Shown: positions 23,802 through 53,925, counted from the stretch's first letter. The stretch is 64,000 nt of DNA from Asterias rubens (GCF_902459465.1 NC_047075.1:9486001-9550000), one strand, 5' to 3'. Program-made: numbers and translations. The notes: generated by a model from the sequence alone, not told the origin.

Positions 23802-23871
23802 ATGGACAGAGCCGCGTCTGTTGTTTGCTTTCTTCTAGCGTGGGGTGCTATTGCACATCTCGCTAAATCTG
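23802..23871 (+). CDS. GPCR exon 1, signal peptide
   Basis: MDRAASVVCFLLAWGAIAHLAKS-G|gtaagt, phase 1. Confidence 0.75.
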
Positions 23872-26800
23872 GTAAGTTATTGTTTTGAATATCAGGTTGT
23901 CAACCACAATTGGGGAAACTGACTTCGGGTAACAGTTAAGTGATTGGGGAGAGATTAGAAACATTGAATAACAAGTTATTAACTACAATTAGGGAAACTG
24001 ACTTCCGGTAAAAATTAAGTGATTGAGGTTTAGAGTAGAACAATTTTACTATTAATCAGAAATTTCTAATTTGCGTGCCAACGCTCTACCAACCGACCCC
24101 TTTATGCGGTCTCGTTGTTCCAAATTGGATCAGATCCCTGGCTGTTCGTCTTAGACCCAATACTTGTAGATGTACATTGTTCACCGAGTCGAGTCTAAGT
24201 ACATTTTAAGTTTCACACCCAAGTTGCATAAGAAACTGTACTGTTCAACCATGGTTCAACTCAGGTGCATCGCTATATATAGTCCACTTCGTGAGCGACA
24301 CAGCCGCCCACATTTAGGGCGTGGCAACTGTCCATGTACAGCTGGCACAGCTGCAGCTGCAGCCTTTCTCCTCTCTCGGGCAGTGAGCAGGCCAGCTCTT
24401 CTCTGCTCCTCGAATATGACAAGGGCTTGACGTGTGAGAGCGCGCCTATCTGTACAATCCTGAGCACACTGTTTTGGGAGGAATACAAGCATTTGTGATT
24501 TTGTCTTTCACGCCACTATTGTACCTCTTGCGAGATGTTCCTGTAGTTCTCCTACTAAGAAATAGTTCTGCATAAAACAGTTTTTTTTGGGAGCGTGGAG
24601 TCTTTCGTTCGGATCATGTGTCCAGTCCAAGGATTGATCTCAGGCTGTGCACGTGGAGGCGTTCCAGCAAGCATTTTCAGATGTCTTCTGTACACGATCC
24701 AAGTTTCACATCTATACAGCAAACTTGTGAGGACGATTGCCTTGTACACCTTAAATTTTGTATGCGTTTTATGCTGTGTTGGTTCAGATTCCGTGCTCGC
24801 AGGCGTCCAATGGCTCGGCTTTCCTTGCAAATCATGGTCCTGATTCCTTTTTCAAGAGAGCCATCATTACACATAACACTGCCGAGATACTTGAAGCTTC
24901 CCACTGTCTTGAGCTTTGTATTAAACTTCAATCGAAATCGAAGGTGGAGGGACAGCTACCGAGGCAGATTGGTATAGCACTTCTGTATTACAAAGGATGG
25001 TGGTAAGGCACAATAGTTGCGAGGCTCCTGCTATCTTGCGCCAAATAATGCAAAGCCATCGGTAAAGAGTGGCACAGTCATGTTCTTCAAAATGAGATCC
25101 ATCAAGTACACTCCTAGCTCGAGGTCGCGTACAGCATGGTTGAGAACACTGGAGAAGAATAGGGTGAAGAGCCCAGCCGCCAATAGAGATTTGGAATGGC
25201 TGGGAATTTTCTCCCTTCGAGAGTACAATACCATTTATGTCATCATAGAAGAGGCGATTCATTTTGAAAAAAACTTTCGAGGACAACCCGGTTTTGACAG
25301 TATAGACCACAGCCCTTTGCTGGTTAGATCTATGAAGACCATAAAGAGGTCCAGGTTTTGTTAGATGCATTTTTCCTGAACCTGTCGTACTGTGAAAATC
25401 ATATCGATGGTACTACGGCCAGCACGAAAGTCACACTGAGACTCAGGTTGACTTTTCTCTGACGCAGTGCCGATGAGGCGATTGAGTATAAAACGAGCCA
25501 ATATCTTTCCAGCAATGGAGAGGGCAGAGATGCCATGGTGTTTCCCGCAGTCGCATTTGGTTTTGATTAGAGAAACAATCATCGCACCCTTGAAATCCTT
25601 GTGCACATCTGCATCCGCCCATATGCTCGTTAAAAGGCTGTGAAAGTTGCGCCACTGGACCTGCTGCATTGAATAACTCTGAAGGAACTCCTTTCATTCC
25701 AGGAGCCTCACCAGAGCTGGTCTGACTGATAGCTTTTCTAACCTCATCAAGAGTAGGAGGGGGGTCAAGGCTGTCAATTGTGGGGTTCTGAGTGATCTGA
25801 TCAAGGGCAGAACTGTCGACAGTGGAAGGTCTATTGAGCAGATTGTTAAAGTGCTCCATCCATCTCTCACTGATGCTGTTATTTATTTCTTGAGCAATGT
25901 CGTACCATCAAGCGGGGCGGATTTTGGTTTGGACGGTCCGTATAATATCTAAAAGAACTGGAGAACATGAACTCTTTGTGTCGGCATAGCACTGGACTTC
26001 ATCTGCTTTCCTATCCCACCAGGCATCTTGCATTCAGTATGTGCTCGGTTTTGGAGGTGTTGAAAACAACGACGTTTCGATGTAAAAGACATGGCATTCT
26101 GCCAAGCCGTAAATAATTTCTGCTGTTTATTCAGCATTGTCCTGATACTTTCGTCGGTTTTATCAAACCAGTGACTTGAACTGGTCACAATTAAGAAAAG
26201 TAAAGTCAATCAGGTGCCTTTGTTTAGATATTGTATGCATCAGGTTGTCTTATACTTGTCAGCTAGCCTGAAGAATGTGTTGGTAGTCGACAGGTCGTTT
26301 TCTGCACACAGGCTCAGAAGTAGAAGGTCAGTTTCACTCATTTGTCGCCCAAGGACCTGTGGACAATTTTTGAAGTCGCTGCCAACTATGACATTAATAT
26401 CGTCAGTAAGGAGAAGTTCGTCAGCAGGGGCGTTGTTTAAATTATACGACCAATGTCCCTAAAGAGCCTTTACTTCAGCGCTACTAGCCAAAGTAAGTGC
26501 ATCAGCACCTGGTGACGAGAAGTATTAAGAGAGGAAGCCAAGTGTCATGAACCTTTTAAGAAACCAACCAGTCCTTTTTAGGATTAATACCGCACTTCCA
26601 AAGAGAAATAAACCACAACCATTATACCTTGAAATACAACGGCAAATGCCCGCCATATTAAGGGGTCGTTTTAGATTTGTGTTTTAAGCCTGCTTTACAG
26701 TGGTTCGAATCTAAATAAATTCTGTTTGCCAAGAGTATTAGCAAACAAAAAAATCGTAAATTGTGGGAGTAGTAGTGGGGGGGGGGGGTTTATACAAATA

Positions 26801-29800
26801 CAGCACATAGTCTTCCACACCTTGGGACTGTCCGCTGGCCTTCTTGAAGGTCCCATGACCATTAGCGGTCTGTGCTTAAGCCAGCACCGCTCACTGCGCG
26901 TAGTTTAGCAATGAAACTCGGCTTGTGTTTGTCCGTTTGCCCGTTTGCCGTTCCCAAGGCTGTTGGAGTGCTAGAAGAGCGGAAGTTCGCTCCCAGGCAA
27001 CCCCGCTTTCGGCAACCAAGCTAGGGCTGGACACTGTTTTGATTGTATAGCAACATCTCTTTGGGATCTTCTACTGAACGTCCTATAGCCTAGGCCAAAC
27101 GATATAAAAGGGGACTTCTGGAACACTCTGTTTTTTTTTTTTTTTTTTTTTTTTTTTTGGGGGGGGGGGGTATAATCAATTGCAGCACATAGTCCAGCGG
27201 GACTTCTGGAACACTTATGTTGATTGATTAATACTGGGGCGACCGGAATATGAACTGCTGCCTCGTTTCGGGTACCGTAACTATCTCTCGAAACCTACTC
27301 TCTAGAAGATACCCACAACAAATCGAAACAAATCGTCACCGTAAAGCTCTTTGGATTTCTAGAAACTACCCGGCCCTTGTTGCTCGAACAAACAAAACAG
27401 CACAGCTCCTTTTTTTATTTCCTTAAACGCACGAACTAAAAAACACAGTTTTTGCATTTCTCGAAGCCACCATCGTTCCGCTACATTGAACTCTCTTTGG
27501 GCTGTTGCACCAGAAACGTGGCAAAAACATTGTAGGCCCTCTTTATCTTCGTATATGCGTACGAGACAATACTTCTTTGGACATATCATCTCGATTTTCT
27601 AGTTCTTGGTCGTATGCATGTTGGCTAGATAGCAAAATAAACTTCTCGAAAGGAAAACTAGTCGGTCCTCCTTGCATGTACTCGAGCTGCATCGCTTTTA
27701 GTTGCCAGCGATTATATATCTAGTTGGGAAATCGAATCTAGCTTGTGTGGAAAATAACACTTTTCCGTCGCAGAGAAGGCAGACATCCAAATATCTAGGA
27801 GCACCTAGAAGAAAGGAGGTAGAACACCAAGCCTGTGGAGTATTTCTAACAAGAGATCAAGCGCCATGGAGGTGTCGAAGCCCAGATGCCGCTTCTTTGC
27901 AAGCTAGGAGCTATTCGAACTACTCCGAGCAAAAAGAAAGATAGCGTAACTTCTATTGAATACCGGCGTACCGTGCGTAGGATACACAGCAACTCCGTGA
28001 TCGGTGCAGAGCATCCCTTATATCCTAGATACGAAACTGCTTACATATTTCCTTTCTGGCCTCCCGTATTCTCTATCTGCATTAGCTCCAGAAATATGTC
28101 CCACGATAGTTGAACGGCATATCGGCCCACCCTTCGTCGTACTCGTAGGCTTCCAGGCACGTAGGCACCCAGGTGCAGACGTGGTTCCTTACCGAGCCAG
28201 TGTTGTCGAGGATGGTGGAAAGTTGCTTCTACTGCCATTGCTGCGACTCTCTTTCTCTAGTAGCAGTGTTGTGTGTTCCACCGAAATTGCCTACGACATA
28301 GCGTTGCTAGCGGCCACCCCAGTGGTTTCAGCTAGGGATATTCGATAGCGGCTACAAGACGTACTATAGTGTTCGAGCAACTAGGAATGCCCCATTCTTC
28401 GCTTCCCTACCCGGTTCCTAGCTCCTAGCTACTATTTGGGGCTGGCTCGTAGCGGCTATACTATACAGCTTTTTCGCTTCCCTGCCCAAACTCCATTCCT
28501 AGCTTCTATTTGCTCTTCCAGCTGCTATTTGCTCTTCCAGCTGCTATTTTTTGACTGCTGCCCGTTCCCCAGTTCCTCGCTTCTATTTGCTCTTCCTGCT
28601 ACTATTTTGGGCTCCAACACCCCATACATCGCTCCCCTGCCCAAACTCCGTTCTTAGCCTTTGTTCGCTCTTCTAGCTGTGTTGTTTGGGTCGGCTGTGA
28701 GATGCGTTTGAGTAACTAGGATCGCCCCATTCGAGCTGTTTTGGGTAGCTTCTAAAGTGTAGGTTTCTAGATATCCAAAATGGAACTGTGCTATTGGTTC
28801 GGCTACGAGGTGTACTGTACCGTTCGAGCAACTAGAGGTGACCCATTCGAGGTGGCTTCTAGAAATCCAAACACTGTGTTGTTTAGCTCGTGCGTTCGAG
28901 CAACTACGGGCCGGGTAGCTTCTGAGAAACTAGGATCGGTTAGCTTTTAGAAATCCAAAAAGAGCTGTGCGGCTACGAGATGTACTAAAGCGTTCGAGCA
29001 ACTAGGGGTGCCCCATTCGAGTTGTTTTGAGTAGCTTCTAGAGGGTAGGTTTCGAAAGATAGTTTTGGCAGCCGAAACGAGGCAGCACTTACTTTTTCGG
29101 TCGCCCCAATGAAGCGCAGATAATGGTCCTGGGACCTGCAAGGAGGCAAACGGACAGCCCCAAGATGTGGAAGACAATGTGCTGTATTTGTATAATTTTT
29201 TATACCCCCCCCCCGCCAAAAAAAAAAAAAACATAAAACAAACAAAACATACAAAACCAAAAGTGTACCAGAAGTCCCCTTTCTCAATGCCTTTCTCTTA
29301 CTACTGTTGGCAATATTTTTGTGGAAAACTAAAACACGGTCACCCAGCAATAAGTAAACTTGTGTTTTTCTAGTCCATAGCATTTGGAAAGTAGAACGGG
29401 AGTCATGGGATAATAATACGATTTTAGATTAAAACATGCAAACAACCTACACAACTTGCCCCCTATGTTTGTTATTGTTGAAATTCTGTCTACGTATTCA
29501 AACATATGTGATGAAATGACAATGGAAAGTTTTATTGAGTTGTATTTGGTTATGCATGGTGGGAGTATGAGATTTACGGTGGTAGCGGCTTGTGTAAAAC
29601 TCTTACGAGTATAGTGTATGTTCTAAAAAGAACCACGTTAATGTAGGGTAATAAATAAGCATAATTATTGTACAGTTGATACAAATTTGAGTTTACTATC
29701 TCAATAAAGTTTTAGTCATTCTTCATTCTTTATTATATTATCAAAACATTGATAGTAATACCTTTTCTATCAATTGAAACACCAACCCATGACGAGCATT

Positions 29801-32800
29801 ACACTTCTGTGTCATTGGCGCTGTAAAACCTCATCTCTCACGGTATGTCAGGTTCCATCATTCAACTCAATATCCAAAAGTGAAGATTTAAACCCACACA
29901 TTCCGATGATTTTAATTTCTTCTGTTTCAGATTACTGTGGTTCATCAAACGTATTAGTTGGAACAGCTCCAGTCAATCTGACATCACCAGGCTATCCAGG
30001 AGTCTATCCTAACTCAGTAGATTGCCAGTGGGAGATCAGGGCTCCAGACTGGTTATATGTGGTGGTGTCCATACAAGATTTATACACAGAGGAGGGATAT
30101 GACTTTGTTTACATTAATGGCACCCTTCTTGATGGACACACCGCGTCAATAGAACTAAACGGAATCACACAACTAAAGTCCATTGCATTTACCTCTTTGA
30201 CGACAACTTATATCCGCTTCGCAGCTGACGATATTGTTTCAGAAAGGGGTTTTCTTCTACAACTTCAAGGCACCAATAATTGTAATACCACGGATTTCAA
30301 CAGAAACATTACAATTTATTGATCGAAATAGTTTATTGTTTGGGAATTTATCTCAGATGCAATTATTTCCAATCGTCAATTAAACACTTCTTAAAAAAAC
30401 AATAATTCGACATGCCTTTCGAGAATGACTTGAGCTGCTTCAAACAAACCTAAAAAACCTTGGAGGAAGATTTAAACCCAAGATTTAATGACTTACGTTC
30501 CCGAATGAACGTACAAGGAAGGACAACAATTAAATTTGTGGTCAACAAGGAAAAATAATTTTCGCCTCCAATATTGAAACACTTTATCGCCGCCGTTTCC
30601 ACAAAATTATGACTGTGTTATAACAAACAAATAATTATGTGTGTGGAGTTTAATTGTTTCTTTTTTGAAACTGCTGTTTCGGAGATGAACAATTATTTGT
30701 TAAAGAAATTATTACCCTTTTAATGAGCTAAAGCATTTTTTTCAACCGTTGTCTGAATGGTAAAAAAGGGGAAAAGAGACGTGCCTGCGCTTTACAGTTT
30801 GTCAAGCAAAGCATTTTACTATAACTTAAAGAATTTATCACCTCGTTAAATAAAGTCACACCTGTATTTGTTCATAGCTGGGTACTAATGTATAAACCAA
30901 CTACTGAAAATCAAATAATTAATCGGTCACGCGCACTAGTGTATTAACGATACTATGGAGCGTTACGTCCCGTTTCCATCAAAGAAACTGTAAACAAATA
31001 GATTAACATATTTTGATTTTGTTTGTTAGACGACGTTGTCGTTTCGTGAAATGGTGACGACATTTCACATTATGGTCTCTGTAATAGCTACAATTTCCTA
31101 CCACTTGTTCGACGAAGTTGTCATTTCGTGAGATGGTGACGACATTTCACATTTTGGTCTTTGTATAAATAGATACAAGTTCCTGCCACTTGGAGGATGA
31201 TCTCGACTGTAGGAATGGGATATGCGTCGCTGCACAAGCAAGGTGTGACGGTAATCTTGACTGCCGATTCGGTCCAGAAGACTATTCATATGTGGATGAA
31301 GAGGATTGTGGTGAGGACCATAGCATTAATGTTGGTGTTATTGTCGCCCTTGTAGCTGTAATTGTTGTTTTTGCTGTTGGTGTTGGTTTCGGTTATGATA
31401 TCGTTGTAGTTTTTGTTAACCTTATTGTCGTTGTCGTTGCCCTGTCGTTGGCGTCGCCGTTTGATTTGTCTTTTTGATTTGGGCCGTTAATACCTCTAAA
31501 TGATGGTTTTCCAATTCATATTTGCAACATGCAGTCAGGGTGAGTACACATCCGCATCTGGTTTGAAATGCCTGGAGAATTATACGAAGGTTCGCTATGT
31601 GGTTAAGGTTTTTCCTTATGGCGAAAATGATGAAATTTACTAGTCAAAAATTGTAGAAAGCCCAACAGCCGAATGAAGATCGAAGACAAGAAAAAAGACG
31701 CGCACGGCCTCCAAGAAACAAAGCCTCCGAAAGACTCGAAAAAAGTAGTTGACATGCCCGAAGGTGAGTAAAACTGCTCTTTCTTTGCTACAACCACGTA
31801 CCGAGGTGTGGATAGAACGATTCTATTTCTGGTAGATCCGAATGCAGGAGAAGAGCAACCGGTCCAGGAATATTTCCTCCAGCGAGAAGTCGAGCGAGAC
31901 TGTAAGAGCTTTGCAAGCTAGCAACTCATCTCCTCTGCAAACTAGGAGGTGCTCGAACAACTCCGCGAAAGAGGAAAGATATGCTTTTTTATCGGGGTAC
32001 CGTAAACATGGCGAAACACCATTGACTATTGTAGAGAAAGGTATAGAACCTAGCTCCTGCACAGAATAGGACGAGCGCTTCCTCCCCTAGAACACAGAAA
32101 GCCACGGCCTCATTACAAAACTACCAGGCAAGACCCCCATCGTTCCGCTACATTGCACTCTCTTCGGGCGGTTGCACCAGAAACGTTGCAAAATATAGCC
32201 TAGGCCAAACGATATAAAAGGGGACTCTGTTTTTTTTTTTTTTTTTTTTTTTGGGGGGGGGGTATAATCAAATGCAGCAGATAGTCCTCCGGGACTTCTG
32301 GAACACTTATGTTGATTGATTAATACTGGGGCGACCGGAAAATGAACTGTTGCATCGTTTCGGCTACCGTAACTATCTCTCGAAACCTACTCTCTAGAAG
32401 ATACCCAAAACAACTCGAATTATGGCACCCTAGTAGCTCGAACGCTATAGTAAATCTCGTCACCGTAAAGCTCTTTTTGGATTTCTAGAAGCTACCCGGC
32501 CTTTGTTGCTCGAACAAACCAAACAGCACATCTCCTTTTTTTATTTGCTCAAACGCACGAACTAAAAAACACAGTTTTTGGATTTCTCGAAGCCACCATC
32601 GTTCCGCTACATTGAACTCTCTTTGGGCTGTTGCACCAGAAACGTGGCAAAAACATTGTAGGCCCTCTTTATCTTTGTATATGCGTACGAGACAATACTT
32701 CTTTGGACATATCATCTCGATTTTCTAGTTCTTGGTCGTATGCGTTTTGGCTAGATAGCAAAACAAACTTCTCGAAAGGAAAACTAGGCGGTCCTCCTTG

Positions 32801-35800
32801 CATGTACTCGAGCTGCATCGCTTTTAGTTGCCAGCGATTATATATCTAGTTGGGAAATCGAATCTAGCTTGTGTGGAAAAATAACACTTTTCCGTCGCAG
32901 ATAAGGCAGACATCCAAATATCTAGGAGCACCTAGAAGAAAGGAGGTAGAACACCAAGCCTGTGGAGTATTTCTAACAACAAGAGATCGAGCGCCATGGA
33001 GGTGTCGAAGCTCTCCAGAAAGCTCAGATGCCGCTTCTTTGCAAGCTAGGAGCTATTCGAACTACTCCGAGCAAAAAGAAAGATAGGGTAGCTTCTATTG
33101 AATACCGGCGTACCGTGCATAGGATAGACAGCAACTCCGTGATCGGTGCAGAGCACCCCTCTTCCTAGATACGAAACTGCTAGCATATTTCCTTTCTGGC
33201 CTCCCGTATTCTCTATCTGCATTAGCTCCAGAAATATGTCCCACGATAGTTGAACGGCATATCGGCCCACCATTCGTCGTACTCGTAGGCTTCCAGGCAC
33301 GTAGGCACCCAGGTGCAGACGTGGTTCCTTACCGAGCCAGTGTTGTCGAGGATGGTGGAAAGTTGCTTCTACTGCCAATGCTGCGACTCTCTTTCTCTAG
33401 TAGCAGTGTTGTGTGTTCCACCGAAATTTCCTTGGGCATAGCGTTGCTAGCGGCCATCCCAGTGGTTGCAGCTAGGGATATTCGATAGCGGCTACAAGAC
33501 GTACTATAGTGTTCGAGCAACTAGGAAAGCCCCATTCTTCGCTTCCCTACCCGGTTCCTAGCTTCTAGCTACTATTTGGGGCTGGCTATACAGCTTTTTC
33601 GCTTCCCTGCCCAAACTCCATTTCTAGCTTCTATTTGCTCTTCCAGCTGCTATGTTTTGGCTGCCTCGTTGCGGCTATAGCTGCTCCCCGTTCCCCTGTC
33701 CCTAGCTTCTGTTTGCTCTTACGGCAACTATTTTGGGCTCCAACACCCCATTATTGGCTTCCCTGTCCAACCCATTCCTAGCCTTTATTCGCTCTTCTAG
33801 CTGCTATGTATGACTACCTCGTTGCGGCTAAAGCTGCTGCCCGTTCCCCATTTCCTCGCTTCTATTTGATCTTCCTGCTACTATTTTGGGCTCCAACACC
33901 CCATTCATCGCTCCCCTGCCCAAACTCCGTTCTTAGCCTTTGTTCGCTATTCTAGCTGTGTTGTTTGGTTCGGCTATGAGATGCGTTCGAGTAACTAGGA
34001 TCGCCCCATTCGAGCTGTTTTGGGTAGCTTCTAAAGTGTAGGTTTCTAGATATCCAAAATGGAACTGTGCTGTTGGTTCGGCTACGAGGTGTACTGTACC
34101 GTTCGAGCAACTAGAGGTGACCCATTCGAGGTGGCTTCTAGAAATCCAAACACTGTGTTGTTTAGTTTTGTGCGTTCGAGCAACTAGGGGCCGGGTAGCT
34201 TCTGAAAAAGGGGCTGTTTGGTTCGGTCGAGAAATTAGAGTCGGTTAGCTTTTAGAAATCCAAAAAGAGCTGTGCGGCTACGAGATGTACTATAGCGTTC
34301 GAGCAACCGGGGGTGCCCCATTCGAGTTGTTTTGAGTAGCTTCTAGAGGGTAGGTTTCGAAAGATAGTTTTGGCAGCCGAAACGAGGTAGCACTTACTTT
34401 TTCGGTCGCCCAAGTGAAGCGCAGATAATGGTCCTGGGACCTGCAAGGAGGCAAACGGATAGCCCCAAGATGTGGAAGACAATGTGCTGTATTTGTATAG
34501 TTTGTTATACCCCCCCCCCCCCCGCCAAAAAAAAAAAAAAAAAAGAAAACAACGAAAAAAAAAAAATAATAAAAAAAAATAAATAAACAAGAGCTAAATT
34601 GCATTTGTGCACAAATGCAGAGCTGTTTCGTCATTAAAATTTTCAAATTTCTCAACTGAGTTATAATTTTGTTAGGTATTCAAAGCAATTTGCCCAATGT
34701 GGCATAAATAAAAAAAAATGTGTGAAAGGTGCAAAAATTGAAAAAATCTTAAAAAATCACGTGATGACGTCATCATGACGTCATGTCAGATTTCAAAAGA
34801 ACTTGTCAATATCCAACATGATCGCATAATCACTTAGGGAGTTATATTAGTTCAAAAAGTGCACCTTTAAGGCCGCGTCACGTGACCCCGATGACGTCAT
34901 TGATCTGAAACTTCACAAATATGATGCCTGCCTGTCAGTTAACAGGTGTGTAAAATTTGAAGTGATTACAAAAAATTGCACTACAGACATCTTCAAAATG
35001 TCAATTTTGAAGAGTTTTCAACCTGCCACTAGAGGGCGCTGTTGCAATTTGTGACGTCATCAACATTTTTGTTGAACTGCCCACCCTTGCTAGACACTTA
35101 CGTCCTTAGAAAGCAACTTCATAATTTTTACCACTTTTGAGTTACAAGGCACTTCCGTTTTTGGCCCATTACGACCGGAAATAGAGGTCATGTGAGGTCA
35201 CGCACACAAAATAAAATAAAGACCTAATTTATCCCTACCCAATCCCGCAAACAGAATCCTAGGGTCTCTTTTCGCTGATTTGATATAAATTTTAAAACAT
35301 TTAACATAAAACACCTTTAAAATGACGTCACGTGACCGCTGATGACGTCATCATGACATCCTTGCTGTAGGATCATCATTGCACCATAACCTTCGATCCC
35401 TTGCAATTCCTCTTTAGGAACTATGCAAAAAATTGTGTGTACTGAAACAGACAAATTAAAAAAACTTTAACAAAAACAAGAGCTGTTTCGCTGCGCTTCG
35501 CTACGAAACAGCTAAACAAACTTTAACAAAAACAAGAGCTGTTTCGCTGCGCTTCGCTACGAAACAGCTAAACAAACTTTAACAAAAACAAGAGCTGTTT
35601 CGCTGCGCTTCGCTACGAAACAGCCAAAAAAAACTTTAACAAGAGCTGTTTCGCTGCGCTTCGCTACGAAACAGCTAAAAAAATAAACACACATAACATA
35701 AAAAAACAAAAGGGTACCAGAAGTCCCCTTTCTCAATGCCTTTCTCTTAATACTACTGTTGGCAATATTTTTGTGGAAAACTATAATACGATTCACCCAG

Positions 35801-49600: not shown

Positions 49601-52265
49601 CTCTGCAAGGTCTGCACAGTCTGGAAATATTGTAAGTCTGATACTTAATTTCCCTATTTATTCTGTTCCGGTTAAATATGTTATTAGGAGCCTGTGCGAA
49701 ATTTCTTGCTCCAGTCTGTGTTTTGTTTGGCTGTTTGGGGGTGGTATTTTTTTATAGACTTACTAGGCTTTTTGGGAAAGTGAACCAGTGAGTGTGTTTG
49801 GCTTTGTGTTTCCTTTTTTGTTTTCTTTGGATGTTTGTTTGTTTGTTGGTTCATTGTTTGTTATTTTTTATGTTTCTGCTTTTCTCCCTAAAACGCGTTT
49901 TTAGATGAATCATAATAATTTTAAATGTATTCACTTTGAATCAAGCAATGATAAGGGGTCTTTTTGGAGGGGCTGAAACACACATTTCCATCACACATTT
50001 TGTGCACAAAATTGTGAATTAAAGAGTCATAAAGGCCAACCCAGGGCCCAATTTCATTGAGCCGCTTAACGGTAAGCAATGTTTCCTTGCTTACTGTAGC
50101 AGTACAGTTTTATTGAGCGTAAACCTACGAGCGGTTGCTAGCTTAAGCGCGCGCAGCATTTTAGATCGTTTGCTCAATCAAAAAAAGAAGAAAGTACTGA
50201 CGAAATGGCGGATGAAATATATGCAGAATGGCGATGAAAAACAAATCATCACCTTCTCTGTCTAAAATGTATTATTTGTAATGGTTCAAAGCGCCCATTG
50301 AAAGGTTACACACTAACTTGGGAATAGACAAGAAGAAGATACATTGTACAACATTTCTGAAACATTTAAGATAAAAGCTTACTTCGCTTCACCTACCTCA
50401 CACACACACACACACACACACGTAAAATACACACCGCTGCGCCGCCATACTAGCAAATTATTGCAATGATACACTATGCGCTGTCCTTAAACAGGGTGCT
50501 TATGCAGAAAATTGGGGCTTGAATGACCCTTTTTGCTTGTTTACCGCTTTAAGCAAAAAAAAAAAATAATAATAAACTTGCTAAAGCAAGGCCATGACAT
50601 TACAAATTAATTTTCTAGGCGCGCCCGTTAAGCACAAAGTCGACCGTTAATCAGCTCCATGAAATTAGGCCCAGATGTAAACCCAGTGATTAGTGGATCC
50701 ATCTGTTCTTCGTAACAGTCTCCAAGGTATTTTGCCATCCTGTGTTAGGTTTTGTGCTTTCCAACACCATTCCCTTGTGAATATGGAACCTTCCTTCATA
50801 TATGGTGTATTTCAAGTAGTTTTAATTGTTAAACTCCCTTGCAGAAGGCGCTTTAAACACAATGGTAATTTGGGGACACTATGTGACAGCAGCTTTTCCA
50901 GGTAAATCTCAGTAGTGTGCGGTTGCTCAGAGCAGCGACAATAATGGTTATTCACCTTGTGAGTCTGCTGCCACCTAGCGTTTTCAAGTCTCCTAAAGTA
51001 TACATTTTCTTGGGGTTATTCAGAGCACACCCGTATTTATCTTTTGTTTAAATTACTGAATTTAACACAAATCTACAAATCAATTGTATTCTAGATACGT
51101 CGATGACTACCGCCTGTGCTGTAGATTTGATGAAGAAGTACCATCGAAAGAGTTTGATTACTCTAAATGTACAACGACTGAGTTGCAACCACCGCTAAAC
51201 ATCTGCGGTAGTCTGATGCGTAATGATCCACTACGAGCGTCTTTGTGGATTCTCGGGTTGAGCGCCCTCATCGGCAACTTGGTGGTCATCATCTGGAGAT
51301 GTAGACGGGGCAAAGAATTAGGCGAGAATGAGACGCACTCATTTTTGGTTCTTAATTTAGCTATATCTGACTTGATGATGGGGGTTTATATGTTGATCAT
51401 TGCTATTGCTGATATAAGGTTGGGTAAGAGTTATTCCAGTGTTGCGAAGGAATGGCGGTCTAATGTGGTTTGCAAGATTGCTGGGGTAGTATCAGTGATG
51501 TCTAGTGAAGCATCGGTATTTTTTGTCACATTGATCAGTCTGGACTGTCTTTTAAGCATTGTATTTCCCTTCAGCCGTGTTACCATCAGAGGAAAGATAA
51601 GCAAAGTTATTGTGGTCATATTATGGTTAGTATCTGCATGTGTTAGTATTATCCCGACTGTATTCAGTGGTGATAGTGATTCCAATGTATACGGTTTGTC
51701 GGATGTGTGCATTGGTCTCCCCCTGATAACTAAGGTGCTGTCTAGTTACTCATTTGTAGATAACTCCATCAGTAGCGTATTTGGTGCAGATTCAATCGCT
51801 ATACCGGTACCTGATGCAAGAGAACCGGCTTGGATCTACTCAATCGTCTTGTTCCTTGGCGTCAATTTGTTTTGTTTTATCGTTGTGTTGAGCTGCTACA
51901 TAGCGATCTTCGTGAAGGTTAAACGCTCATCTAGGCTGGTGAAAGTAACTGCTCGCCGACAGAGGGAAGTTAAGATGGCGATAAAGATGGCTCTTATAGT
52001 CGGTACTGACTTCGCATGTTGGATGCCGGTGATCATTATGGGGATTCTATCCCAGGCTGAGATTGTAGAAATTGGTCCTGATATGTACGCCTGGATCGTT
52101 GTGTTCATACTCCCAATAAACTCCTCGCTAAACCCGTATCTCTACACTTTCTACTCTAAAATAACAGGACAGAGCAACACAAAGAAACCCGAACCGAAGG
52201 TGGAGATGAAAATAACAAAATCCACTGAGACACTAGAAACCCGCGCCTCTGAAAATAGTCAGTAA
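23802..52265 (+). CDS. GRL101 / LGR type C-like GPCR with (CUB-LDLa)x4-LDLa-LRR ectodomain, about 1244 aa, 16 exons
   Basis: All exons are GT-AG with compatible phases; summed length 3735 nt is divisible by 3. Signal peptide, 4 CUB, 5 LDLa, LRRNT, 4 LRR exons, then a hinge (LCC...C...CGSLM) and 7TM exon ending NSSLNPYLYT. Confidence 0.88.
24430..26520 (-). mobile_element. Degenerate RTE-clade LINE (endonuclease and RT remnants) in GPCR intron 1
   Basis: Frameshifted pieces EHFNNLLNRPS, PPTLDEVRKAISQ, QPESQCDFRAGRSTIDMIFTVRQVQEKC, SFKYLGS, KVYKAIVLTSLLYRCETW. Confidence 0.85.
26768..29305. mobile_element. Heavily deleted Polinton/Maverick-like element, copy 1
   Basis: Starts AGTAGTAGT, ends ACTACT; long imperfect inverted termini (G-run, TATACAAATACAGCACAT.GTCTTCCACA...); CTAG/TCGA-rich interior; no TSD or Polinton core gene recognised. 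Confidence 0.5.
29931..30281 (+). CDS. GPCR exon, CUB1
   Basis: tttcag|; CG...LTSPGYPGVYPNSVDCQWEI...YDFV...RGF; donor gtaata. Confidence 0.88.
31173..31310 (+). CDS. GPCR exon, LDLa1
   Basis: C...DCRNGICV....RCDGNLDC...DEEDC, 138 nt, phase 1-1. Confidence 0.88.
34586..35455. mobile_element. Non-autonomous Helentron/Helitron2-like element
   Basis: Inserted in an A-run with no TSD; begins aacaagag, then a 20-bp palindrome tgcatttgtgcacaaatgca (34600-34619) and short subterminal IR gagctgtttcg ... gaaacag. Confidence 0.6.
35465..35676 (+). repeat. Tandem array of 4 hairpin mini-units (period 56, 56, 51 bp)
   Basis: Unit aacaagagctgtttcg-ctgcgcttcgcta-cgaaacagct contains both end motifs of the adjacent element. 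Confidence 0.9.
36417..36764 (+). CDS. GPCR exon, CUB2
   Basis: About 90% aa identical to CUB1; 348 nt. Confidence 0.88.
38206..38343 (+). CDS. GPCR exon, LDLa2
   Basis: Near-identical to LDLa1; 138 nt. Confidence 0.88.
39672..40022 (+). CDS. GPCR exon, CUB3
   Basis: 351 nt, phase 1-1, paralogous to CUB1 and CUB2. Confidence 0.88.
40844..40981 (+). CDS. GPCR exon, LDLa3
   Basis: CHLEDNFDCRNGVCVSRQARCDGQPDC...DEEDC; 138 nt. Confidence 0.88.
41661..42014 (+). CDS. GPCR exon, CUB4 (divergent)
   Basis: ACG...YPTGYPPSLDCNWNI...FKSDSYVSGPGF; 354 nt. Confidence 0.85.
42690..42910 (+). repeat. Imperfect about 40-bp tandem repeat (GGGATTCC/GGGATCCC motifs)
   Basis: About 5-6 units gggattcccggcagg...aattcacaatcgggatcccct; related motifs at 43080-43260. 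Confidence 0.8.
43389..43517 (+). CDS. GPCR exon, LDLa4
   Basis: CPGTDVFDCEDGSCLNSSGRCDGFRDCQISRKDEVDC; 129 nt. Confidence 0.85.
44281..44403 (+). CDS. GPCR exon, LDLa5
   Basis: CPGSFKCKDSSTCIHMSAVCDDKFDCPDEDDETQAAC; 123 nt. Confidence 0.88.
44904..46036. mobile_element. Solo LTR (1133 bp)
   Basis: TGTCA...TGACA termini with an exact 5-bp TSD ATAAT (44899-44903, 46037-46041). Confidence 0.8.
46222..46339 (+). CDS. GPCR exon, LRR N-terminal cap
   Basis: DDRCPTMCSC...QC..., phase 1-2, bridging LDLa and LRR phases. Confidence 0.8.
46690..46761 (+). CDS. GPCR exon, LRR1
   Basis: 72 nt, KLANENIIQLNTGIFKSLSFLESL. Confidence 0.82.
47335..47406 (+). CDS. GPCR exon, LRR2
   Basis: 72 nt, VLTNNSLRDFNAGTFSGLFNLTSL. 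Confidence 0.85.
47682..47753 (+). CDS. GPCR exon, LRR3
   Basis: 72 nt, DLSQNNISRLQSNIFEDLLNLRTL. Confidence 0.85.
47778..48500. repeat. (GAT/GAC/GGT)n microsatellite containing an assembly gap
   Basis: Trinucleotide run; 163 N at 48156-48318. Confidence 0.95.
49542..49631 (+). CDS. GPCR exon, atypical LRR4
   Basis: 90 nt, FLIRGKWNNERSTMNIAPGALQGLHSLEIL. Confidence 0.75.
50045..50671. mobile_element. PIF/Harbinger-type MITE
   Basis: TIR GGCCCAATTTCAT / ATGAAATTAGGCC, 3-bp TSD CAG; partial relatives near 41352 and 17960. Confidence 0.8.
51095..52265 (+). CDS. GPCR terminal exon, hinge plus 7TM
   Basis: YVDDYRLCC...ICGSLMRNDPLR...NLAISDLMMGVY...WRSNVVCKIAG...ACWMP...NSSLNPYLYT; stop TAA at 52263-52265. 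Confidence 0.93.
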
Positions 52266-52789: not shown

Positions 52790-53925
52790 TTTTCAAATCT
52801 GTACCAATGTCAGTTTAGTTTGTAGCAGTTTGCAACCTCTCAGTCAGTTTTCTCTCATATTATGATACTTTTTAAATGTGTACCATGTAGGTAAATTTAG
52901 CAGTTTGAAACAGCTAAGTAAATTTTTTTCCTGTTTTACAAGACTTTTTAAATTTATACCACAGATCAATTTAGTTGGTAAGCAGTTTGTAAAACCTCTC
53001 ATTCAGTTTTCTCTCATATTACGAGACTTTTTAAATGTGTACCATATATAAGTAAATTTAGCAGTTTGAAACAGCTAAGTCAATTTTTTCCCTCTTTTAC
53101 AAGACTTTTAAAATTTATACCATAGGTCAATTTCGTTGGTAAGCAGTTTGTAAAACCTCTCATTCAGTTTTCTCTCATATTACGAGACTTTTAAAATGTG
53201 TACCATATATAAGTAAATTTAGCAGTTTGAAACAGCTAAGTCAATTTTTTCCCTCTTTTACAAGACTTTTTAAATTTATACCATAGGTCAATTTAGTTGG
53301 TAAGCAGTTTGCAACCTTTCATTCAGTTTTCTCTCATATCATGGGACGTTTTAAGTGAGTACCATTAGGTCATTTTAGCAGTTTGAAACAGCTGATTTAT
53401 TTTGTTCTCTTTTGAAGGACCTTTTAAATTTGTACCACAGGTCGGTAAGCAGTTTGCATCCTCTCATTCAGTTTTCTCTCATGTTATGAGACTTTTTGTG
53501 TGTACCATAGGTCAATTTAGTTCGTAAGCAGTTTGCAACCTTTCATTCAGTTTTCTCTCATTATTAAGAGACTTTTTTAATTGTGTACCATATAGGTCAA
53601 TTTAGCAGTTTGAAACAGCTAAGTAAATTGTTGTCCTCTTTTACAAGACTTTTTAAATTTATACCATAGATCAATTTAGTTGGTAAGCAGTTTGCAACCT
53701 CTCATTCAGTTTTCTCTCATATCATGGGACGTTTTAAGTGAGTACCGTTAGGTCATTTTAGCAGTTTGAAACAGCTAATTTATTTTGTTCTCTTTTGAAA
53801 GACCTTTTAAATTTGTACCACAGGTCGGTAAGCAGTTTGCATCCTCTCATTCATTTTTCTCTCATTATTAAGAGACTTTTTGTGTGTACCATAAGTCAAT
53901 TTAGTTGGTAAGCAGTTTGAAGTAA
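52790..53925 (+). repeat. Minisatellite, about 80-bp monomer in about 160-bp dimers
   Basis: Anchor cagttttctctcat at about 52845, 53004, 53165, 53324, 53469, 53548, 53707, 53852. Confidence 0.9.

Follow-up and report, generated by a model that had tools for sequence, protein, structure and literature searches.

A CUB-LDLa-bearing, GRL101-like receptor gene of the starfish Asterias rubens and its echinoderm relatives

The window analysed here is a stretch of 64,000 nucleotides of Asterias rubens DNA (GCF_902459465.1 NC_047075.1:9486001-9550000), AT-rich animal DNA, and all coordinates are positions counted from its first letter, except those prefixed C15, which refer to the scaffold on which the window occupies 9,486,001-9,550,000. 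Between 23.8 and 52.3 kb, open frames on its plus strand contain four blocks resembling CUB, five resembling LDLa and a long seven-transmembrane (7TM) block. They belong to one gene, LOC117299647, of 17 exons bounded by AG/GT sites, which encodes 1268 amino acids with no internal stop codon, from the ATG at 23802 to the stop codon ending at 52265. The domain order is a signal peptide, (CUB-LDLa)x4, a further LDLa, the N-terminal Cys cap LRRNT, five exons of leucine-rich repeats (LRRs), a Cys-rich hinge and the 7TM domain. A sequence-only reading of the window had predicted a receptor with these same ends, and an ATG and a stop codon do stand there. Its order of CUB, LDLa and 7TM modules in one frame also held, while its four LRRs and 16 exons are corrected to five and 17, because one LRR exon, probably LRR1 (46690-46761), had been missed. 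We consider it rather probable that LOC117299647 is an orphan type-C (GRL101-like, “C2-like”) LRR G-protein-coupled receptor, or LGR, belonging to an echinoderm CUB-LDLa family and switched by its array in the manner proposed below.

Exon borders were set by AG/GT sites and reading phase alone, and the LRR exons were located with a profile made from homologues over their LRR regions. A scan of the open frames for the LxxLxLxxN pattern missed all LRR exons, because phase-2 introns split the motif; tblastn with homologues found some of them and the homologue profile recovered them. Pfam was run on single exons, LRR_8 was scored on the RefSeq product of LOC117299647 (P0168), and CUBs in the wider family were counted with a family-trained CUB profile. 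The exons are as follows.

23802..23871, plus strand: exon 1, start codon and signal peptide MDRAASVVCFLLAWGAIAHLAKS, phase-1 donor; identical in P0168
29931..30281, plus strand: CUB1 exon, 351 nt, phase 1-1; Pfam E 1.6e-10, AG/GT borders, in P0168
31173..31310, plus strand: LDLa1 exon, 138 nt, phase 1-1; Pfam E 1.1e-3, in P0168
36417..36764, plus strand: CUB2 exon, 348 nt, phase 1-1, skipped in RefSeq; Pfam E 7.4e-12, contig depth in X6, X9 and X10
38206..38343, plus strand: LDLa2 exon, 138 nt, phase 1-1, skipped in RefSeq; Pfam E 9e-5, contig depth in X6, X9 and X10
39672..40022, plus strand: CUB3 exon, 351 nt, phase 1-1; Pfam E 1.1e-11, contig joints at 40022
40844..40981, plus strand: LDLa3 exon, 138 nt, phase 1-1; Pfam E 3e-5, joined to CUB4 in X1 and X6
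41661..42014, plus strand: CUB4 exon, 354 nt, phase 1-1; Pfam E 8e-6, X1, X6 and X9 contigs with 0-1 mismatches
43389..43517, plus strand: LDLa4 exon, 129 nt, phase 1-1; Pfam E 7.8e-4, in P0168
44281..44403, plus strand: LDLa5 exon, 123 nt, phase 1-1, more canonical than the other four LDLa; Pfam E 4e-8, 33.8 bits with the cut-off at 24.1
46222..46339, plus strand: LRRNT exon, 118 nt, phase 1 to 2; tblastn with homologues, alignment, in P0168
46690..46761, plus strand: LRR1 exon, 72 nt, phase 2-2; profile match, borders, homologue alignment
47335..47406, plus strand: LRR2 exon, 72 nt, phase 2-2; profile match, borders, homologue alignment
47682..47753, plus strand: LRR3 exon, 72 nt, phase 2-2; tblastn and profile match, borders, homologue alignment
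49228..49299, plus strand: LRR4 exon, 72 nt, phase 2-2; profile match, borders, homologue alignment
49542..49631, plus strand: LRR5 exon, 90 nt, phase 2-2, irregular last repeat; homologue alignment, P0168
51095..52265, plus strand: exon of hinge, 7TM, tail and stop codon, with DCL instead of DRY in TM3; Pfam 7tm_1, RXFP1 match

The exons of the signal peptide, the CUBs and the LDLa modules are phase 1-1 cassettes, as had been claimed for the whole ectodomain, whereas LRRNT begins in phase 1 and ends in phase 2, and every LRR exon is phase 2-2. On single exons Pfam recognizes all four CUBs (E 8e-6 to 7e-12), all five LDLa as Ldl_recept_a (E 1e-3 to 4e-8) and, in the last exon, 7tm_1 (E 8e-27), and LRR_8 scores 60.9 to 80.2 bits on the RefSeq product against a cut-off of 27. 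The LRRNT, the five repeats and the hinge, YVDDYRLCC...C...PPLN.CG, align with homologues without a hole, and a spacer of only three residues separates the last Cys of LDLa5 from the first Cys of LRRNT. Two other acceptors for LRR5 were dropped: 49556 breaks the frame, and 49575 is in frame but leaves a hole relative to the homologues.

The RefSeq model, returned by a word-indexed search and annotated as “uncharacterized protein”, is 100% identical over 15 exons to the splice-site model, which was built independently of it. P0168 lacks CUB2-LDLa2 and contains 16 additional residues (CNTTDFNRNITIYLSK), where CUB3 runs on for 48 nt (40023-40070) to a weak donor that divides AAAA from GTTTAT. No joint at 40070 is listed in the contigs of the runs X1, X6, X9 and X10, in which the joints use 40022. 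LOC117299647 is a real, expressed gene that is already in the automatic catalogues, and its RefSeq model probably misses or mis-joins cassettes.

The contigs of these four runs were placed on 36380-42050 at 97% likeness or better. The runs have no RNA label on record and some intron sequence is also covered; the contigs are taken as spliced RNA because exon-exon joints are present. Sampled words of the 7TM exon are found at a share of 0.99 in X1 and 0.46-0.76 in five further runs (X5-X10). For CUB2 with 200 nt of intron on each side, where exon-only coverage would give about 0.44, the shares are 0.41 in X6, 0.34 in X5, 0.30 in X9, 0.24 in X10 and 0.05 in X1. The LDLa3 to CUB4 joint falls exactly on the model borders in two contigs, one of X1 (3066 nt) and one of X6 (671 nt), both of which include all 138 nt of LDLa3 without a mismatch, and in X1, X6 and X9 CUB4 continues into the opening letters of LDLa4, the loose ends matching 43392 onward. 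The 3066-nt contig starts at LDLa3; beyond CUB4 there are 2570 nt in X1 and 2648 nt in X9, while the remaining coding sequence amounts to 1919 nt. Tandem repeats of about 160 nt lie at 52850-53900, from about 600 nt past the stop codon, and are also present behind the upstream gene copy described below; at such repeats contig assembly would break, about where the long X1 and X9 contigs should end.

The long first intron, the introns of 1-5 kb between modules and the location in a region of tandem duplication are what might be expected if the model had merged two genes, one for a secreted or single-pass CUB/LDLa protein and, downstream of it, one for an ordinary LDLa-LRR-7TM receptor. This is scarcely credible. 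All borders hold one frame, none of the CUB or LDLa exons leads in frame into a stop codon or a transmembrane segment, and RefSeq has one protein. Contigs of X1, X6 and X9 pass from CUB4 to LDLa4, those of X1 and X6 with the LDLa3 to CUB4 joint in the same contig, and the same fusion recurs in dozens of independent models from 11 echinoderm species. The proposed fusion of a CUB/LDLa array with an LGR core in one gene is upheld by the identical RefSeq protein, by the joints on both sides of CUB4 and by the dozens of homologous models.

About 64 kb upstream, at C15:9,445,462-9,474,096, the whole gene is present a second time, colinear and 96-98.7% identical including introns. This copy contains three CUB-LDLa units, without a stretch equivalent to ~29215-35554. 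The signal peptide that it encodes is the same, and its first CUB agrees with CUB2 in each of the first 69 nt. In its 7TM exon (C15:9472902-9474096) a one-base insertion and a 3-nt deletion break the frame and bring in stop codons, and the copy is probably a young pseudogene, provided that the insertion is not an error of assembly. That it is a falsely duplicated haplotype was considered and is unlikely, since about 29 kb of unique DNA lies between the copies.

Traces of how the array was built remain within the gene itself, where the following features were also recorded.

27136-31651 and 32230-38684, plus strand: two tandem blocks, each made of a repeat element, a CUB and an LDLa, 92-94% alike; self-BLAST
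37207..37294, plus strand: remnant of a CUB exon 3' end in the CUB2-LDLa2 intron, GT donor kept; ~95% like the CUB1 and CUB3 3' ends
48156..48318, no strand: assembly gap of 163 N in the LRR3-LRR4 intron, within simple repeats; flanking exons in frame

The third unit, 39237-40994, is 86-95% alike to the blocks of units 1 and 2 by self-BLAST. Judged by their nucleotide identity of 92-95%, units 1-3 are the result of recent tandem duplication. CUB4, in comparison, is about 38-40% identical to CUB1-3, and CUB4, LDLa4 and LDLa5 are old, at about 40% identity to the others. The values of dN/dS among the young units, 0.3-0.7, indicate that constraint is present and mild. A ~2-kb unclassified repeat occurs twice, at 27136-29245 and 32230-34552, ahead of CUB1 and CUB2, with 90-94% likeness between the two; the upstream copy has one such element at the corresponding position. 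Pfam on the open reading frames (ORFs) of these two repeats gave nothing. The pair fits a gain or loss of units by recombination between them, and the CUB remnant (37207-37341) is the trace of unequal crossing-over among units. As to the assembly gap, the alignment with homologues (LRRNT and five repeats) indicates no missing repeat, and RefSeq joins LRR3 to LRR4. Around the gap, 47760-48560 is made of simple repeats rich in GAT, GAC and CAT, and in A. amurensis the orthologue as modelled by RefSeq (P0166) has a long Asp/Gly-rich run at this position, probably a retained intron. In intron 1, decayed retroelement ORFs lie on the minus strand at 24500-26200, with one weak RVT_1 match (E 4.5e-4) below the cut-off, the single match that Pfam gave on the intron ORFs.

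The number of units in the product is a separate question from the fusion. In X9, CUB2 is joined to LDLa2 (36764 to 38206/7), an LDLa 3' end stands directly ahead of the CUB2 acceptor (36417), a CUB1/3-type start directly follows the LDLa2 donor, and an LDLa2-type 3' end joins CUB4 directly, with LDLa3 lacking depth. In X6, a CUB 3' end is joined to LDLa3, and a short-sided joint from 37294 to 38206, which may use the donor of the remnant, is indistinguishable from a CUB1/3 to LDLa joint. None of X1, X6, X9 and X10 has contigs over the 5' half of CUB3. Two X6 contigs carry the final 27 letters of exon 1 directly ahead of a CUB2-type start; this junction was at first taken for exon skipping, an interpretation that is withdrawn, as the upstream copy has the same signal peptide and a first CUB like CUB2 over 69 nt, to which the junction may belong. 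The absence of CUB2 in X1 was also rejected as proof of skipping, because X1 lacks depth on CUB3 as well, although RefSeq includes CUB3.

It is possible, though doubtful, that the usual product holds at most three CUB-LDLa units and that the fourth is haplotype-specific, silent or an assembly error in a tandem repeat. The sole RefSeq model skips CUB2-LDLa2, the upstream copy has three units and no equivalent of 29215-35554, and X1 is without depth on CUB2 and LDLa2, with 0.05 of the CUB2 words. The X9 junction of an LDLa2-type end with CUB4, the missing depth on LDLa3 there and the lack of a contig spanning four units point in the same direction. Each junction type of a four-unit product, however, was seen at least once: LDLa to CUB2, CUB2 to LDLa2, LDLa2 to a CUB1/3-type start, CUB to LDLa3 and LDLa3 to CUB4. 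CUB2 has a depth of 37-42 in X6, and at several of the sites that set the upstream copy apart no difference is listed there; the units are 6-14% apart, unlike collapsed or doubled reads; close paralogues have 4-7 CUBs; and the holes of X1, which extend to a CUB present in RefSeq, prove little. The receptor is read here as having three or four CUB-LDLa pairs, and the number of units in its product is likely to vary, by splicing and/or by haplotype or copy differences. The variable-length isoforms foreseen by the sequence-only reading are plausible, given the RefSeq skip and the X9 junction of an LDLa2-type end with CUB4, with the qualification that some of the variation may be of haplotype or copy and not of splicing. 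Two other features of the contigs were recorded. In X10, at depth 5, one contig joins 38323, inside LDLa2, to 46228, inside LRRNT, without a splice site, and is probably an assembly or template-switch artefact. At 41351-41506, in the LDLa3-CUB4 intron, many high-depth contigs of all four runs continue into unlike sequence, and this segment looks like a common dispersed repeat.

The 7TM exon was searched against 1.84 billion representative proteins and gave 899 matches at E 1e-30 or better, the top ones being long starfish proteins. All six of the top relatives contain CUB, LDLa, LRR_8 and 7tm_1. Among 250 collected proteins, CUB was found in at least 79 relatives besides the model, from all five echinoderm classes: Patiria, Acanthaster, two Asterias, Amphiura, two Diadema, Lytechinus, Strongylocentrotus, Apostichopus and the crinoids Anneissia and Antedon. 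The CUB-bearing relatives of known origin in this set are echinoderm without exception, and judged on them the CUB/LDLa-LGR design looks specific to the echinoderm lineage. The sequence-only reading had likewise called the receptor lineage-specific, which agrees with these origins, but the gene is not a singular one, being part of a large family in the public protein sets. Per gene, the family has 1-11 CUBs and 1-14 LDLa modules, and in the A. rubens genome at least 30 related 7TM exons were counted, the majority on scaffold C15.

On 7TM trees, all unrooted, the CUB label is clustered, with 8 changes against 25.6 in shuffles. A CUB-bearing clade of 64 rows, which includes LOC117299647, contains an asteroid clade of 51 rows (SH-aLRT 95) and a brittle-star clade of 12 rows (98); a subclade of 23 rows with this gene has an SH-aLRT of 99. 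The sole CUB-free named row in the 64-row clade is a truncated model of 636 amino acids (P0004), which shares a 90% cluster with a CUB-bearing protein, and further CUB-free rows in the larger tree are models of 317-668 amino acids. Because the trees are unrooted, gain and loss of CUB are not separable. The echinoderm relatives P0089/P0252, P0014/P0249 and P0214/P0235 have the same LRR-7TM core with SRCR arrays, C-type lectin or HYR modules, replacing CUB/LDLa or beside it; the SRCR-array relatives in A. rubens are named “DMBT1-like” and are on the same scaffold as the gene.

The end of TM3 reads D-C-L (ISLDCLLSI, 51530-51550) in place of D/E-R-Y, so that position 3.50 is Cys. Arg is found at 3.50 in 217 of 246 relatives, while the starfish-only subclade around this gene (23 tree rows, 25 members) has Cys in 20 of 25 and Ser in the other five. 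The A. amurensis orthologue also has Cys, which shows that this is not a sequencing slip, and the presence of Cys or Ser throughout the subclade indicates that the loss of Arg3.50 is old and has been retained. D2.50, CWxP and NPxxY (LNLAISD, FACWMPV, SSLNPYLY) are conserved, both in the family and in the subclade. The “LGR signalling core” of the sequence-only reading is therefore an LGR-type LRR-7TM as described, from which the DRY arginine has gone. Natural class A receptors that have no Arg3.50, among them C5aR2 with its DLC, do not couple to G proteins.

This loss allows another interpretation, an atypical receptor with a 7TM domain that no longer activates G proteins and acts in scavenging, endocytosis or through arrestin only, the CUB/LDLa array clearing ligands. 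Besides the DCL of TM3, the Cys or Ser in the whole starfish subclade as against the Arg kept by 217 of 246 relatives, and the Cys of A. amurensis, it draws on the closest solved CUB being that of cubilin and on CUB and LDLa being typical of endocytic receptors (cubilin, LRPs). The conservation of D2.50, CWxP and NPxxY across the subclade is, however, what is expected of a switching receptor, and RXFP1 (entry 7tmw) has EKY at the DRY site yet couples to Gs, so type-C LGRs tolerate change there. We regard the atypical receptor as rather unlikely, and keep to the C2-like receptor switched by its array. For this receptor the subclade-wide loss of the DRY arginine constitutes a natural experiment on type-C LGR signalling.

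In the proposed mechanism, the CUB/LDLa array would capture an extracellular ligand, probably a protein, and this capture is possibly calcium-dependent, by analogy with other CUB and LDLa modules. Binding would shift the LRR-hinge block on the 7TM domain, as in other LGRs, and so switch the receptor. Given Cys3.50, the output may be weak or non-canonical G-protein coupling, or may be based on arrestin or endocytosis. The number of CUB-LDLa units in the product would vary via exon skipping and/or haplotype differences in copy number.

Several points weigh against this account. The C2-like assignment is a provisional one drawn from module counts and the automatic names of paralogues. LDLa1, LDLa2 and LDLa4, taken alone, are under the Pfam gathering cut-off, which LDLa3 and LDLa5 pass, and the calcium motifs, E...YD.V...DD in the CUBs and an acidic CD..DC.DEDDE cage in LDLa5, were recognized by eye. 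It is from their length that the X1 and X9 contigs are deduced to extend to the 7TM exon, the first 30 letters past CUB4 being the part displayed. The four-fold array of the sequence-only reading stands as four in-frame units in the DNA, but all four appear together in no single contig of X1, X6, X9 or X10 and in no gene model, RefSeq having three (units 1, 3 and 4); the units are too alike for short-read contigs to span them. The upstream copy is 96-100% identical in most exons, and contigs are not cleanly assignable to one copy or the other. At their variant letters the X6 and X9 contigs show a mosaic of the states of CUB1, CUB2, CUB3 and the upstream copy, which points to allelic shuffling among units. 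Finally, with Arg3.50 lost, ordinary G-protein signalling is not to be assumed.

The textbook LGRs are hormone receptors with a fixed ectodomain plan, whereas this family fits an LRR-7TM core with growing and shrinking CUB/LDLa arrays and numbers dozens of genes in a genome. Its expansion, its kinds of modules and the precedent of a snail gene cluster, discussed below, suggest as a hypothesis that such receptors may sense microbes, food or conspecific cues; the sequence-only reading had suggested large ligands, microbes or environmental cues. In its broadest form, which we hold to be unlikely, a GRL101-type receptor would have become a fast-evolving recognition family of echinoderms, with ectodomains assembled from cassettes such as innate-immune and endocytic receptors typically have (CUB and LDLa in this gene, SRCR, C-type lectin or HYR in relatives), with a non-canonical DRY-less subclade and, as cassette numbers vary by haplotype and/or splice form, with repertoires that differ between individuals for microbial, dietary or conspecific protein cues. 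The recognition idea is testable in A. rubens, a species already used for receptor deorphanization.

In the literature searched in full text no description of CUB on an LGR was found, the matches to “CUB” being j.cub DOIs or adhesion G-protein-coupled receptors. Within that literature neither the CUB-bearing LGR design nor the loss of DRY is described, and the starfish subclade with this loss appears here as new. RefSeq and UniRef label many of the paralogues “GRL101-like”, and these orphan names conceal the CUB-LDLa LGR family.

Among known receptors, the closest solved chain is RXFP1 (7tmw, E 2e-37), followed by FSHR, LHCGR and TSHR at about 1e-27 and other class A receptors at 1e-14 or weaker, and the stretch ahead of TM1 aligns with the FSHR hinge. 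The gene has the attributes of an LGR, namely a 7TM domain of the RXFP/glycoprotein-hormone type, an LRR domain with an N-terminal Cys cap and a Cys-rich hinge. An LDLa N-terminal to the LRRs is the hallmark of type C (PMC11863921), and here LDLa5 lies directly ahead of LRRNT, with four more LDLa exons before it. The type C1 receptors RXFP1/RXFP2, fly Lgr3/Lgr4 and starfish RXFP/LGR3 share with this gene the LDLa before the LRRs, RXFP1 being also the nearest structure. Their plan of one or two LDLa, about ten LRRs and a long LDLa-LRR linker is not that of the starfish gene, with its five LDLa, four CUBs, five LRRs and three residues between LDLa5 and LRRNT.

The proximity to RXFP1 raises the question of whether the protein is a hormone receptor of the insulin/relaxin system in which the CUB/LDLa array merely adds affinity. 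Type-C LGRs bind relaxin-type peptides, and Veenstra put forward GRL101 as a receptor for insulin-like growth factor (PMC8286064). The same paper gives one GRL101 orthologue per ambulacrarian species, as opposed to at least 30 fast-duplicating paralogues with 1-11 CUBs, which far outnumber the few known insulin-like peptides. The starfish relaxin-type peptides act, according to PMC11863921, on RXFP/LGR3 with one or two LDLa, and the present gene has five LRRs and no LDLa-LRR linker of the RXFP type. A hormone receptor of this kind is quite improbable.

GRL101 of Lymnaea stagnalis, like the starfish gene, is an orphan with a rhodopsin-class LGR 7TM domain and several LDLa modules before a short LRR domain, and PMC8286064 describes twelve LDLa in a pure array, six LRRs and no CUB. 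The starfish gene shares with type C2 the LDLa array and the short LRR domain and departs from its LDLa/LRR-only ectodomain by the four interleaved CUBs; the differences from GRL101 are LDLa only against alternating CUB/LDLa, six repeats against five, and a DRY arginine that the starfish gene lacks. A CUB-free LDLa-LRR-7TM protein of Patiria (P0113) may be the better candidate for the true GRL101 orthologue.

For the array, the relevant comparison is with single-pass proteins. In LRP3/10/12, NETO1/2, LEV-10 and matriptase, CUB and LDLa alternate or are adjacent and form the ligand-binding part, and the starfish CUBs show similarity to those of cubilin, neuropilin, C1s and MASP, the first three being the nearest solved ones to CUB1. 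In place of an LRR-7TM core, LRP3/10/12, NETO1/2, LEV-10 and matriptase have a single transmembrane helix or a protease domain, whereas the starfish array runs in frame into LRR exons and a 7TM exon.

For an added module on clustered GRL101-like receptors, the nearest precedent in print comes from a snail. SudRes2 of Biomphalaria sudanica is a cluster of GRL101-like genes with an added lectin domain, linked to schistosome resistance, and a role in parasite recognition has been proposed for it (PMC12297450). Both it and the starfish genes form a dense tandem cluster of GRL101-like LGRs with an extra N-terminal recognition module and haplotype-variable content. The module differs, a single C-type lectin in the mollusc and a CUB-LDLa array in the echinoderms. 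With SudRes2 as the first case, the echinoderm family may be a second and independent one of LGRs recruited for recognition.

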